Below are positions 204 through 24,269 of a stretch of DNA of 33,972 nucleotides, piece after piece. Location of the stretch: assembly GCA_964234715.1 (NCBI GenBank), contig OZ174278.1; one strand, given 5' to 3'. The notes beneath the pieces were generated by a model that was not told where the DNA came from, did not search any database, and saw only the letters and a list, made by a program, of their open reading frames with translations. Made by a program: the position numbers and the translations under genes. How positions within the stretch are numbered: position 1 is the first letter of the stretch; each line of letters opens with the position of its first letter. Source of the stretch: Podarcis melisellensis. Lineage: Eukaryota.

Positions 204-291
204 ACACTTAGTAAATGAGTCTGAAAGCTCACCAGGGCAACCTAAATATTTCACAGGCAAGGAAATACCTATTTATTTTTAATCTTTATCC

Positions 292-435
292 ATAGCTCAG
301 CCGGTAAAGCATGAGACTCTTAATCTCAGGTTCATGGGTTGGAGCCCCACGTTGGGCAAAAGATTCCTACATTGCAGGGGGTTGGACTAGATGACTCTCA
401 AAATCCCTTCCAACTCTACAATTCTATGATTCTAT
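292..435 (+). mobile_element. SINE with tRNA-Lys(CTT) head and CR1-LINE-derived 3' tail
   Basis: 293-357 closely matches vertebrate tRNA-Lys-CTT (anticodon CTT 319-321), followed by GGGGTTGGACTAGATGAC..CCCTTCCAAC..ATTCTATGATTCTA, the CR1 3' end with its octamer repeat. Confidence 0.85.
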
Positions 436-7110: not shown

Positions 7111-7338
<228 letters not shown>

Positions 7339-18639: not shown

Positions 18640-19808
18640 GATCATATTATGCCAAATGTGATTATTGATTAAAAGCTTTGAGGGTTGGGTAAAATAAAGC
18701 CCCATGAAGCCTACAACATAAACACATATGGCTGGTGTAGAAACAACTCTCTTAATACTTAATACAACAATCTCAATCTCTTAATACTGGTTGAAACTAG
18801 ATTAGGAGTGAGCCACGAGACCACTCTCTTTCCCACCAAAACAGACCCTACTTGACTGCACACTGACATTAATAAATCCTGGTTCAGAGAGAAACTGTTT
18901 ATGATTCAATATTGTTAACACTGGTACTAATATAAGTCATAGTCACATAAAGACAGGGAGGGGGTAATTTGCATGCAATCAGTGATTGGAATGGGAGAAG
19001 AGAGTACATGAACTGCCTTGGAACCTAAAGTTCAAAGGTGAGATTTAAGTATTTTAAGCTAAATGTTGTTGGACTATAACTCTCGCTAACTCTAACCATT
19101 GATCATGCTGGTTGGAGCTGATGGGAGTTGGAACAACATCTGAAAGGCCACAGGTTCCCATGTTTGCTTATTTTTTTTTAAAGAGGATCTTAAAACCTGA
19201 TCCAGACCTCTTAGCTATGGTTAAATGAATATACCATACCATTTTCCTGTAATTACATTTTAAAGTTTAATTTGAACATTTACTATACAGAGCATTGAAT
19301 GACCAGAGAGAAAAGTCTTATAATGAAATTTTAATTATACTTATTTTAATAAAATAGTGAAATTAGCAAACATAATCCACAGCCTAGTTAATGTCAAAGT
19401 TCTTTGATTTCAGTCATTTTAGTTCCACTGAGGTCAACAAGATTAAAATCAGCTACTTTATCAAAATAATTAAAATCACTGCGCTGGGATCATACTTAAG
19501 ATTTTTTCCCTCCTTTCTGGTAAATGTTTCTATTGAAGCTAACTTCAAAGGATTTTTTGGGGTAAATAATAATAATAATATCAGCATCAAACATACTTTT
19601 CAGGCCACGATGTAAAGCTCTTCAGACAGCTCTGTTCTACATTTGCGATGTGAAAATTATTAATTGCAAATTCCCAAAAGAATCAGAAAGATCTCTTGGG
19701 AGAATTTTGGGGCGTACTGCATGATATAGTGATATGAAACAGACTCAGAGAGGTTTTTCTTTTGTGGGGGGGGGGGAGCTGCTGCTGCTGCTACAAAACC
19801 CTGTTCCA

Positions 19809-19981
19809 TGAGGGCACAAGGAGAAGGGGACGACAGAGGACAAGATGGTTGGACAGTGTTCTCGAAGCTACCATCATGACTTTGACCAAACTGTGGGAGG
19901 CAGTGGAAGACAGGAATGCCTGGCATGCTCTGGTCCATGGGGTCATGAAGAGTCGGACACAACTAAATGACTAAACAACAA
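19809..19981 (+). mobile_element. Bov-B 3' end fragment
   Basis: EGTRRRGRQRTRWLDSVLEAT.. followed by GACTAAACAACAA tail. Confidence 0.9.
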
Positions 19982-20028
19982 ATTGGTGGCTGAGGTATGT
20001 ATCTTTACAGTGTGCTATGAGACACATG

Positions 20029-20065
<37 letters not shown>

Positions 20066-20112
20066 GGTTTTGGTGTCCTCGGGTGTCTTCCCGTGTAAAA
20101 GTTGGGGTGTCT

Positions 20113-20154
20113 AGGCGACGTTTCGACGAGGTCTCACTCGTCATCTTCAGGCTG
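20113..20154 (-). ncRNA. Minimal hammerhead motif, inverted pLTR copy 1 (sense in NALCN pre-mRNA)
   Basis: Exact reverse complement of 22310-22351. Confidence 0.6.
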
Positions 20155-20522
20155 GTGCTTTCGGCTTCTTGTTACTGGAACAGAGCAGGATCTCAGTGTT
20201 TGAGTTCCTATAAATACTGTTGAGGGGGTGTGGTGTATAGCCTCCAATGTTCTGGGCAGAGAGGAAGTTCCCAGGCTAGTGTGCCTTTTCTTCTTTTGTT
20301 CCTTAATTAGTAATAAATTAGTAATTAATTTATTTAAGTAATAAATTAGTAATTAAGGAACAAACGTCGCCTAGACACCCCAACTTTTACACGGGAAGAC
20401 ACCCGAGGACACCAAAACCTGCATTCCTGTACCCGTGAAAATCTACGAAAGCATATATATATATATATATATGCAGGTTTTGGTGTCCTCGGGTGTCTTC
20501 CCGTGTAAAAGTTGGGGTGTCT

Positions 20523-20564
20523 AGGCGACGTTTCGACGAGGTCTCACTCGTCATCTTCAGGCTG
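20523..20564 (-). ncRNA. Minimal hammerhead motif, inverted pLTR copy 2 (sense in NALCN pre-mRNA)
   Basis: Exact reverse complement of 22310-22351. Confidence 0.6.
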
Positions 20565-20887
20565 GTGCTTTCGGCTTCTTGTTACTGGAACAGAGCAGGA
20601 TCTCAGTGTTTGAGTTCCTATAAATACTGTTGAGGGGGTGTGGTGTATAGCCTCCAATGTTCTGGGCAGAGAGGAAGTTCCCAGGCTAGTGTGCCTTTTC
20701 TTCTTTTGTTCCTTAATTACTTGAGGGATATCTTGAGTGATTTCTTGAGTGATATCCTGAGTACCACTTAGGTGGGTCATTAGGTGTGGATTAGTTGCTA
20801 AAGTCTTTGTGTCTTGACCTCTTGAACTTTGTGAAGAGTTTTTCTGAGAAGATGGCTGTACTGCACTTAGTTGTGCTCTGGCTATGA

Positions 20888-22330
20888 TATGTTGACGACA
20901 CCTTTGTAATTTGGCCACACGGGAAGGAAAAACTGGATAGCTTCCTCACACATCTCAACAGCCTACACCCCAAAATACAATTCACTATGGAAATAGAAGC
21001 CAACAACCAACTTCCGTTCCTTGACGTCCTAATCTACAAAAAACCTGATGGCTCCCTAGGACACACTATCTACCGGAAAAAAACACACACCAACCGCTAC
21101 TTACATGCACAATCACACCACCACCCTGCACAAATAAACTCCGTAGCCAAGACTCTCATCTCCAGAACCAAACGCCTGGCTGACAAAGACCACTTGACAA
21201 CTGAGTTACAGAATCTCTCTAATGTGTTAATTGCCAATGGATACCAGCAAAACAGGGTTACGAAGCTAATCCAAAAAGAAACACCCCCCAAAAACCAAGA
21301 CACAGAAGAAAACAATGGCATGGCCCTCCTTCCTTATATCAAGGGCACTACAGATAAAATTAGCAAAATCCTCCATAAACACAATATCAAAACAGCCTTT
21401 TGCACCAACCAAAAAATAGCCAATATCCTCAGAAACCCCAAGGATAAAATCCAGTTGGAAAACCAAGGGGTCTATGAAATACCCTGCAAAGTCTGCCCAG
21501 CCACGTACATTGGACAAACAAACAGACGAATAAATGCACGTATCGCAGAACACAAGAATGCCGTCAAAAAAGAAGAAAAAACTTCCTCTCTTTTCCAACA
21601 CATGAAAGAAACAGGACACGAAATTAATTTTGCAGATTCCAAATTGCTCTTTAACATGGAACATCACCACAAGAGAATAATCATGGAAGCCATCGAGATA
21701 GAGAAACACCCTCACAACATGAACAAGCGTGACGACACATCCCGCTTGCCAGACATCTGGAAATTAGCCCTCCCCACAAAAACTGACACCAGATCCAGAG
21801 GCACACAGAACGCCATCACCAATCAACCACACCAGACCCAAACCCAGACCCTCTCCACAGATAAATTACAGACACCATCCAGTAGCCAAACCATGGTGGC
21901 ACCTCCGGATGCTGCACCCCCCTGCAATCCCTACACAGATCTGGCTGACACAGGCCACAAAACCACAGCTCGCCCCTATACACGAAGCCAAGCCAGAGCA
22001 CAACTAAGTGCAGTACAGCCATCTTCTCAGAAAAACTCTTCACAAAGTTCAAGAGGTCAAGACACAAAGACTTTAGCAACTAATCCACACCTAATGACCC
22101 ACCTAAGTGGTACTCAGGATATCACTCAAGAAATCACTCAAGATATCCCTCAAGTAATTAAGGAACAAAAGAAGAAAAGGCACACTAGCCTGGGAACTTC
22201 CTCTCTGCCCAGAACATTGGAGGCTATACACCACACCCCCTCAACAGTATTTATAGGAACTCAAACACTGAGATCCTGCTCTGTTCCAGTAACAAGAAGC
22301 CGAAAGCACCAGCCTGAAGATGACGAGTGA
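20888..22330 (+). CDS. 5'-truncated PLE ORF: RT C-terminal part (from YVDD) + GIY-YIG endonuclease + low-complexity tail; first ATG at 20987
   Basis: YVDDTFVIWPHG..LPFLDV..YRKKTHTNRYL; GVYEIPCKVCPATYIGQT (21467-21520) with CxxC and H..H zinc ligands; EAIEI..NMN; open for 480 codons; in-frame TGA immediately upstream (20885-20887). Confidence 0.9.
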   Translation, partial: YVDDTFVIWPHGKEKLDSFLTHLNSLHPKIQFTMEIEANNQLPFLDVLIYKKPDGSLGHTIYRKKTHTNRYLHAQSHHHPAQINSVAKTLISRTKRLADKDHLTTELQNLSNVLIANGYQQNRVTKLIQKETPPKNQDTEENNGMALLPYIKGTTDKISKILHKHNIKTAFCTNQKIANILRNPKDKIQLENQGVYEIPCKVCPATYIGQTNRRINARIAEHKNAVKKEEKTSSLFQHMKETGHEINFADSKLLFNMEHHHKRIIMEAIEIEKHPHNMNKRDDTSRLPDIWKLALPTKTDTRSRGTQNAITNQPHQTQTQTLSTDKLQTPSSSQTMVAPPDAAPPCNPYTDLADTGHKTTARPYTRSQARAQLSAVQPSSQKNSSQSSRGQDTKTLATNPHLMTHLSGTQDITQEITQDIPQVIKEQKKKRHTSLGTSSLPRTLEAIHHTPSTVFIGTQTLRSCSVPVTRSRKHQPEDDE

Positions 22331-22351
22331 GACCTCGTCGAAACGTCGCCT
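22310..22351 (+). ncRNA. Minimal type I hammerhead ribozyme motif in the pLTR
   Basis: CUGAAGA 22314-22320, stem II GACGAG/CUCGUC, GAAA 22340-22343, palindromic ACGU stem III, GUC cleavage triplet ending 22347; stem I is weak (2 bp next to the core). Confidence 0.6.
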
Positions 22352-22429
22352 AGACACCCCAACTTTTACACGGGAAGACACCCGAGGACACCAAAACCTG
22401 CATTCCTGTACCCGTGAAAATCTACGAAA

Positions 22430-22493
<64 letters not shown>

Positions 22494-24269
22494 GCATCAA
22501 TGGGAAATGAAACAGAGAAAGACTTGTAAAAAATAACAACAAAAAACTCCCTACTGCAGTGGAACATAAAATAGTTCATGAAAGTGCAAATGAATGTCGG
22601 AAGAGTGAGGCATTGTTGATATATCCCTAGATGGGAGCTGTAGTCAAACGATAGTTGAACAACAACAGGTTGGGGAATACTGGGTTTATAAGGACGACGT
22701 TTCCCTCTCCCTTTACAGGCCTCACTCATCTGAAACTGAGTGAGTTCTGACACTATGGAGGGACAGGTGTGGGATAGATACCCAGTTTTTTTGTGACATT
22801 ATGTCTGCCATAAAAATGTCGGCCCATATTCCACCTCCCGCCCCCCCCCTAATACAATTTACTCTGGTAGAATGAGGGTGTGTGTGCATTTTTCAAAGCC
22901 TTGGATTGTCTTGGGGAAATGATCTGAATTTCCCCCGATTAAAAAACTCAGCCCATCACCCCACAACCACCACTTTAATGTCAAAACGCAATTCTGGAAT
23001 GTAATCTGAGCCTTGTTGCTATGGTGTCGTTTCAAATACTCACATCTCTTTTCTATAGAAAATTCTTAGTATTGTACTGAAATAAAAACAAGCCCACATT
23101 TAAAAGAATGCCATTTCAAAGAAATCAAGGCAATTTTGCTACCTCCTCTACTGGGGGAAAAAATAAATAAAGCAGAAAGGAGATATGTAGATGGGGAAGG
23201 GGGGGGGGAATGCTGAAGGAGGATCCATAATGATTCCCCAAATCTGGCAGTTTTACTTTATAATGCTGGACACAGTTTATATACACAAAGTAATCAAACA
23301 CAGTTTTATACAGCTGCAGAAAATTGAAGGATTTCCTACTTTGGTGGGGCAGTGGTGGTGGAACAACTATACTCCCAATTCTCAAAAAGCTTTGAAGACA
23401 TAAATTACACATCTATTAGGAGAACTATGCATTAAAGAATTTCAGAATGTATGATTATGTCTAGAATGTGCATCTTACACTTAAGCCTCTATACATTTGA
23501 TGGGTGGCCTCAGGTAGACTGGGGGGAATAGGGTGGTGGTAATCCACAGTGGTAGAATGGACTTCACGGGACTTCAGTCTGCAGGTAGGGGAAACATAGT
23601 ATTTTTGACCACATCCCTGCATCATCATCATCGTTGTTATGTTTAAAAAACCCTGCAAGCAGAAAAGTAGCACACAAGGGAGTGGACTGGCCTGGAACTT
23701 CCATCTCAGTTGCAGCCAGCACTCTCCCTACAGAGACATCAGTGCTGCTTATTGGGGTGGTGTGGGGGCGGTGATATCAGAGCTGTGAAGCACTGGTGGA
23801 TCTGATCTTCTGCTCTCATTGGTGCACCTGCACAATGAGGCTTTTGCAAACCATGTCCAGCCTGCCATGGTCCTCCCCTGGCCTGCCAAGTTGTGCTGGG
23901 TCATTGAAGGAACTGCTTTGGAAGAAACTGTTTTGGGAAGGGCTGAAGCTCAATGGAAGAGCACCTGCTTCGTTTTCCCTGTGGTGCAGCTTCAACTTCT
24001 TAAACTGTTTCCCATAATTGTGTGTACTGGAAACATGGGGCGAGATTCGCCCAACAGACTCCATCAGCAGAAGCCCTGGGCAAGGACCCCCACTTACACA
24101 ATGGGGCTTCCACCCTCCACCCTCCCACTGCACTCCTGAAATTGGCTCTGGGGGATCTGGAGAACTCCCTGAACAGCTCAGCAAGATAAAGGGAGATTGT
24201 TCCATCTGACAAACTGCAATGCTTATGCTAACTCCAAGTTCATAACAGTACAAAACTGAATTCCACCCG

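Follow-up and report, generated by a model that had tools for sequence, protein, structure and literature searches.

The window, by which we mean the whole stretch of 33,972 nucleotides of DNA analysed here (without any N), contains a coding exon of the host gene NALCN and, in one of the introns of this gene, a 5'-truncated Penelope-like element (PLE) that is arranged in two adjacent insertion units (Table 1). The host gene was found by a Pfam search with translated open frames of the minus strand, for which the 150 longest ones lying outside the element were used; one frame matched Ion_trans. The frame of this exon aligns with the human NALCN structures 7cu3 and 6xiw over residues 376-425 (E 9e-22). 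NALCN is located on the minus strand and is transcribed from high to low plus-strand coordinates, so that two minus-strand hammerhead motifs of the element are sense in its pre-mRNA, as a preliminary description of this DNA had proposed. About 13 kb separate the exon from the element, which is upstream of it.

Directly beside the insertion we noted a very highly repeated SINE-like segment (19702-19981), whose contig word depth is in the millions. It has good RNA read coverage, and many reads leave it at 19809/19810 and 19981 into other sequence. The sole Rfam match at gathering threshold in the window is tRNA-like (290-355, plus strand; 30.2 bits, threshold 29) and may be the head of a tRNA-derived SINE rather than a tRNA gene.

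Table 1. Positions of the host exon, the insertion units and the hammerhead copies in the window.
Feature	Position	Strand	Description
NALCN coding exon	7165-7296	-	132 nt; about residues 377-420 in human NALCN, domain II S1; AG acceptor, GTGAGT donor
(TA)n target microsatellite, left flank	20031-20062		sequence
Unit 1 inverted arm	20061-20309	-	249 nt, inverted repeat I2; reverse complement of 22155-22403, 100%; ends at ATG+84, no tail
Minimal hammerhead copy 2	20117-20150	-	within the smaller unit (249-nt inverted arm); follows copy 1 at a distance of 410 nt in the transcript; predicted cut after C at + 20117
AT-rich junction filler	20310-20361		52 nt; sequence
Unit 1 direct 3' end (fragment, tailed)	20362-20453	+	copy of 22341-22432; direct repeat D2, inverted repeats I3 and I4
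(TA)n between units	20454-20472		sequence
Unit 2 inverted arm	20471-20883	-	413 nt, inverted repeat I1; reverse complement of 21991-22403, 100%; no tail
Minimal hammerhead copy 1	20527-20560	-	in the full 413-nt inverted arm; first transcribed in NALCN pre-mRNA; predicted cut after C at + 20527
5'-truncated PLE ORF	20888-22330	+	from the RT motif YVDD through the GIY-YIG endonuclease, long C-terminal tail
Direct 3' arm and tail	21991-22432	+	arm 21991-22403, 29-nt tail 22404-22432; element end at ATG+113
Third identical hammerhead	22314-22347	+	direct 3' arm; sense to the element, antisense to NALCN
(TA)n right flank	22433-22491		sequence

Architecture of the insertion

The architecture of the locus can be observed directly. 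Two adjacent units, 20061-20453 and 20471-22432, occupy a single (TA)n microsatellite. In each of them an inverted 3' end terminating at ATG+84 is fused to a direct 3' end extending to ATG+113. The arms of the largest inverted repeat, I1, are 1107 nt apart. The direct copy in unit 1 can be followed over 111 nt (20362-20472 corresponds to 22341-22451) and yields two local inverted pairs of 63 nt (I3 and I4, 100%). Since the direct fragment of unit 1 begins inside the hammerhead (AAACGTC...), there is no complete ribozyme at this place; in the NALCN transcript the fragment 20362-20453 provides the antisense strand of the 63-bp duplexes. The junction filler closes with 12 nt (20350-20361) that repeat the end of the arm, 20298-20309, in reverse complement, a scar of snap-back or template switching. 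The identity between the repeat arms is 100% throughout, which indicates that the insertion is very recent.

With an inverted, 5'-truncated copy beside a direct copy, a tail at one end (optional in such insertions, with 30-40 nt) and (TA)n at all three boundaries, the locus fits a Poseidon-type insertion (PMC8557442, PMC11167929). Complex tandem and inverted insertions as well as (TA)n targets are typical of PLEs (PMC8557442). For PAc, the Poseidon_Ac element of Anolis carolinensis, it has been demonstrated that AT-rich targets are preferred and that both target strands are cut and extended; PAc has two internal start sites of reverse transcription, and its tail lies at nt 85-119 (PMC11167929). 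At the present locus, both strands of the cut target may have primed reverse transcription at the two internal start sites of the element, giving rise to the inverted and the direct 3' ends. We infer this mechanism because the unit ends coincide with the reverse-transcription start sites and the tail of PAc. The hammerheads probably reached the NALCN intron passively, carried by a pair of neighbouring, very young units inserted into a single (TA)n microsatellite; the inverted arms put two of them on the NALCN-sense strand. The two copies are no designed tandem; each belongs to the inverted arm of one of the neighbouring units.

Nested repeats of this kind could also arise as an assembly artefact, for instance a fold-back chimera or a collapsed repeat, in which case the real locus would hold a simpler insertion or none. 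In favour of this, all arms are perfectly identical, the short-read contigs of the best-matching DNA run break at repeats, with none spanning the whole stretch, and PLE insertions are known to trouble assemblies (PMC8557442). However, the junctions obey the rules of PLEs, with ATG+84 and ATG+113 ends and (TA)n in both units and with the template-switch scar. Moreover, a minus-strand hammerhead upstream of a plus-strand hammerhead, as in the window, is found in the independent relative loci L064, L063, L055, L013 and L073, and a second, independent run from this taxon contains both flanks of the insertion. We therefore regard an artefact as very unlikely.

The open reading frame of the element

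The ORF contains a GIY-YIG endonuclease domain (E 4.9e-4). It is 99% identical to LOC144326219 of Podarcis muralis, 74-75% identical to proteins of snakes and agamids and 46% identical (E 9e-83) to P0080, the PAc-like protein of Anolis, which equals that of PAc. In a comparison involving proteins P0009, P0017 and P0080, the RT/EN part is nearer to beetle proteins (Anoplophora, Pyrocoelia; ~59-60%) than to the PAc-like protein of Anolis (46%), and these similarities could reflect either old paralogous Poseidon lineages or a horizontal transfer between insects and squamates.

Beyond the endonuclease, the frame stays open for ~190 codons (21750-22330, plus strand), across the whole terminal repeat and up to a TGA in hammerhead loop II. 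It thereby overlaps an ATG at 22320, which is in another frame. Relatives have a short TRS-type motif in common in their C-terminal tails. The ATG at 22320 is built from A9, the extra U and G10.1 of the plus-strand hammerhead, and the ORF that starts here begins with MTSETSSKRR. When the 38-residue peptide starting in the hammerhead was compared with the N-terminus of PAc, the homology was not significant (E 0.52), so that our claim is limited to the same layout.

Three copies of a minimal hammerhead motif

By pattern search we identified a motif of 34 nt that occurs in three identical copies in the window, two on the minus strand and one on the plus strand. It is composed of CUGAAGA, one extra U, a 6-bp stem II and then GAAACGUC. 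The chance expectation of the exact motif is 0.00 per window, and the looser pattern CTGANGA-N10-30-GAAACGTH was likewise found three times, compared to 0.02 expected. The plus copy lies downstream of the YVDD/GIY-YIG ORF and is sense to it, and the minus copies lie inside the inverted arms of the element.

The catalytic core C3-U4-G5-A6-N7-G8-A9 / G12-A13-A14-A15.1 / U16.1-H17 is present in all three copies (CUGAAGA ... GAAA-CG-UC), and each of these cores aligns to the core columns of a covariance model of related hammerheads (R1, see below). A single U is unpaired between A9 and G10.1. Helix II (GACGAG/CUCGUC, with a 6-nt loop) is closed by G10.1-C11.1, lies within the 4-8 bp expected of minimal hammerheads of PLEs and forms in the predicted fold of the isolated motif. 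Stem I has two contiguous pairs adjoining the core (GC/GC), and its third position is A.C; for helix I of this class, about 3-5 bp are expected. The motif has no loop 3, and positions 15.2-16.2 are palindromic (A-CG-U); hence helix III can form only between two copies, and a monomer cannot form it. Searching 19800-22700 with Rfam, whose hammerhead models include types I/III, HH9 and HH10, returned no hammerhead family, neither at gathering thresholds nor at E values up to 10.

These observations agree with several points of the preliminary description. The CUGAAGA-stem II motifs that it had placed on the minus strand, 410 nt apart, are exact copies of the motif, the cuts predicted after GUC fall at the same two positions, and the stem I of 2 bp next to the core was described correctly, GC/GC alone being contiguous.

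Hammerheads in related elements

As relatives we used 80 PLE loci from metagenome contigs. Scanning them with a simple descriptor revealed 23 minimal hammerheads in 19 loci, compared to 0 in reversed and 0.15 in shuffled sequences. Two features that the descriptor does not impose were nearly constant: the extra nucleotide after A9 was found in all 23 and the G10.1-C11.1 pair in 22. The inner palindrome was CG in 15 and CATG in 4 of the 23, and helix I had a mode of 3 bp, with 2 bp in two cases.

A covariance model (R1) was built from six hammerheads in unrelated PLE loci, with the window excluded. In the 34-kb window it matches solely the three sites (34.8 bits, E 2.7e-8), and its match to copy 1 spans 20521-20566. 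Over 35 distinct sequences, 93.6% of the cells were paired, compared to 56% after shuffling and 25-46% in slid controls, and 113 double-sided changes were counted, where shuffling gave an expectation of 33; the underlying alignment was fitted to the model and thus somewhat favours the structure. Covariation was found for five of the six pairs of helix II and for all three pairs of helix I in this family alignment. Judged by their sequence, the motifs are genuine minimal type I hammerheads of PLEs, of the Poseidon type. The core, the covariance model and the covariation all agree with the earlier view that they are Penelope-type hammerheads with a palindromic ACGU helix III.

In two further relatives, L025 and L056, we found closely spaced hammerhead pairs on opposite strands. 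Such pairs are frequent among the relative loci, and the inverted-arm architecture is thus a habit of the family. Pairs of minimal hammerheads on opposite strands, 100-700 bp apart, have also been described previously (PMC4209133). Neither a core ATG nor an ORF that terminates within the hammerhead proved to be general among the relatives: in 8 loci A9-x-G10.1 reads AAG, ACG or ATG, and the upstream ORFs end 32-480 nt before the core.

Predicted fold in the NALCN pre-mRNA

We folded a transcript of 2521 nt, reaching from 22520 to 20000, and obtained a minimum free energy of -1420.6 kcal/mol. In the predicted fold every base of copy 1 is paired to the antisense arm (22302-22364), within a perfect duplex of 413 bp. 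Of copy 2 only stem II forms, and AAACGUC together with the downstream flank lies in a 63-bp duplex with 20362-20385 onward. When shorter transcripts were folded, reaching 5 or 30 nt beyond the position where copy 1 would be cut, this copy was already in the duplex. The hammerhead fold, when imposed, lies 28 kcal/mol higher for copy 1, 20 kcal/mol for copy 2 and about 92 kcal/mol for both, with the reservation that minimum-free-energy folding ignores kinetics, helicases and proteins and that stem II can form fast and locally. A dimer of the two hammerheads, which in cis is a pseudoknot and was evaluated as a two-strand structure without stem I, reaches -20.3 kcal/mol, compared to -20.4 kcal/mol for two monomers; the ACGU/ACGU helix III thus adds no net stability. 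This fits the low in vitro activity of minimal hammerheads (PMC4209133).

On the basis of these predictions, copy 1 would be zipped into the 413-bp perfect duplex while it emerges, the cut site of copy 2 would be held in the 63-bp duplex, and a helix III dimer would need both copies to be free at once. It had been suggested earlier that the antisense arm is transcribed first and masks the motifs, and in the predicted fold this is the case. From the same masking a potential folding-dependent switch had been derived, which our data do not support: the masking is not balanced, consisting of a perfect duplex of 413 bp and a local duplex of 63 bp.

The feature that is relevant for the host might be the long intronic hairpin itself (a 413-bp stem with a 1.1-kb loop, plus the 63-bp hairpin), with the hammerheads as bystanders. 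It could serve as a substrate for A-to-I editing or for small RNAs, or it could hinder transcription or splicing. The inverted repeats I1, I3 and I4 are complementary at 100%, the fold of 2.5 kb is dominated by their duplexes, and the 63-bp hairpin obtains miRNA-precursor-like, sub-threshold scores in Rfam. The RNA differences that might have pointed to editing are, in contrast, family variants, as shown in the next section. We consider this possibility unlikely on balance, although worth keeping in mind; it is compatible with the reading that we prefer, in which the hammerheads are passive and probably silent.

The smaller hairpin (20362-20533) is perfect over 63 bp with a loop of (TA)n, and its similarity to the plant miRNA precursor MIR537 reaches 60.9 bits at a threshold of 100. 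The (TA)n tracts, too, receive sub-threshold miRNA-like scores in Rfam. We rejected the hairpin as a member of a miRNA family; with scores below threshold, it is a structural look-alike.

RNA and DNA reads

No RNA run is on record as containing the stretch. In two raw-read RNA runs, which are labelled as another species than the best-matching DNA run, the element is covered at a depth of ~5-40 in both directions by reads that are 95-100% alike, and the depth is zero on the unique intron flanks. The reads therefore stem from other copies of the family. According to the contig depth in DNA the element family is highly repeated, and it looks active and transcribed.

In these family reads no sites of piled-up RNA starts or ends were found on the element, the cut sites included, with the restriction that at the low depth of the two runs (~5-40) weak cleavage could be missed. 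Standard libraries capture 5'-OH ends poorly. Differences of the types A>G and T>C between RNA and the window are likewise seen in the DNA contigs that carry this label and are thus variants of the family and not editing.

Discussion

Overall, our data indicate, with a probability of roughly 0.8, that the motifs are genuine minimal hammerheads of a PLE which were passively inserted and which, within the NALCN pre-mRNA, are in all likelihood without catalytic activity. The identity of the motifs, their strand and their place in the PLE family were determined directly, and the silence in vivo is what we infer from the predicted masking and from the behaviour of PAc. In the life cycle of the element itself, where the hammerhead overlaps the start codon of an ORF, it would, by analogy with PAc, cleave weakly and only with the protein of the element.

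The preliminary description had envisaged a more active role, in which the sense hammerheads pair via ACGU and cut the NALCN pre-mRNA co-transcriptionally, the antisense arm acting as an on/off switch that tunes the expression of the channel. Several of its premises hold: the motifs are real, share the NALCN-sense strand at a distance of 410 nt, and are preceded in transcription by the antisense arm; dimer-dependent activity of minimal hammerheads has been documented (PMC4209133). A co-transcriptional self-cleaving pair is nevertheless not what the other results suggest. About 92 kcal/mol would be needed to free both copies, copy 1 pairs with the arm once it is made, the 4-bp helix III of a dimer brings no net gain, and stem I has 2 bp. 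The hammerhead of PAc showed no cleavage without the PAc protein, and no RNA-seq read ends were seen at its cut site (PMC11167929, Frangieh et al. 2024); nor do the family reads pile up at the cut sites here. Furthermore, the insertion, with its identical arms, is too young to have been shaped by selection on the host. We consider this mechanism most improbable.

Even if a cut occurred, its consequences would probably be small. As summarised in PMC2995048, citing Dye 2006 and Fong 2009, introns cut co-transcriptionally by a hammerhead are still spliced efficiently, and only a fast ribozyme aborts processing. Slow cuts of this kind are thus compatible with splicing, and little effect is to be expected of a minimal hammerhead that is weak and depends on a protein, which also speaks against a tuning of NALCN by the pair.

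It has been shown that the PAc protein assists the cleavage of PAc's own RNA in vitro (PMC11167929). The family in the present genome is apparently active and transcribed, and help in trans from the protein that it encodes is conceivable. By analogy, in cells that express it, the RT/EN protein of the family might bind the sense hammerheads of the NALCN pre-mRNA, open the fold-back and assist in cutting. Such an effect would couple the activity of a transposon to an allele-specific loss of a neuronal leak-channel transcript; of all the possibilities raised here, it is the one to which we give the least credence.

For the biology of NALCN the pair is thus probably of little importance: minimal hammerheads are standard in PLEs, intronic copies are common, and according to the predicted fold double-stranded RNA keeps the pair locked. 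The modest value of the locus lies in a clean and very young PLE insertion architecture in a lacertid, the ends of which fall exactly at the in vitro start sites of reverse transcription in the Anolis element. Should the insertion be polymorphic, it may offer a natural test of the effect of a fold-back and of hammerheads on a host gene.

The intronic ribozymes HH9 and HH10 are type I hammerheads that are likewise sense in an intron of a protein-coding gene. They are single and canonical, are stable with tertiary loop contacts, have long been conserved at orthologous loci and are recognised by Rfam. In contrast, the window motif is minimal, dimer-dependent and Rfam-negative and lies in an insertion too young for conservation. 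A host-functional ribozyme of the HH9/HH10 kind was therefore rejected, given the very recent insertion, a monomer without helix III and a hammerhead fold 20-92 kcal/mol above the predicted minimum.

The non-LTR retrozymes of animals also have same-strand hammerheads a few hundred nt apart and of PLE origin, and in Xenopus ~44% of the retrozyme copies overlap introns (bioRxiv 10.64898/2026.07.22.740005). Retrozymes, however, are head-to-tail tandem units able to give circular RNAs, whereas the copies in the window belong to two inverted arms that are split by antisense sequence.

In the minimal hammerheads of metazoan PLEs, helix II is long and helix I short, a single nucleotide stays unpaired between 9 and 10.1, G10.1 pairs with C11.1, 15.2-16.2 are palindromic and loop 3 is missing; they have low activity, and none as monomers (PMC4209133). 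The whole signature is present in the window motif, and we see no essential difference to the hammerheads of this group (Cervera and de la Pena 2014). Their helix I usually has 4-5 bp, with 2 bp in Drosophila virilis (PMC4209133), which places the window motif at the short end.

The closest parallel among these systems is found with PAc, whose activity has been assayed; the hammerheads of the window are known from sequence alone. The endonuclease-to-hammerhead region differs, with ~520 nt in frame here and 126 nt of non-coding sequence in PAc. Both have the core CUGANGA (CUGAGGA in PAc) followed by the extra U, a 6-bp stem II with G10.1-C11.1 and GAAACGUC, and neither has a loop 3. Stem I is very short in both (3 bp in PAc, 2 bp here), and the RT/GIY-YIG proteins are 46% identical. 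The ends at ~+84 and ~+113 agree with the tail of PAc and with the two sites at which its reverse transcription begins, and the target is AT-rich in either case. In both elements the start codon of an ORF is formed by A9-U-G10.1, with the cut ~25 nt past the ATG. All pairs of stem II except G10.1-C11.1 differ (GACGAG/CUCGUC here, GCCUGC/GUGGGC in PAc), so that stem II has changed in a compensating manner around this one pair, and the layout with a start codon inside the ribozyme is extended to a second lineage of squamates.
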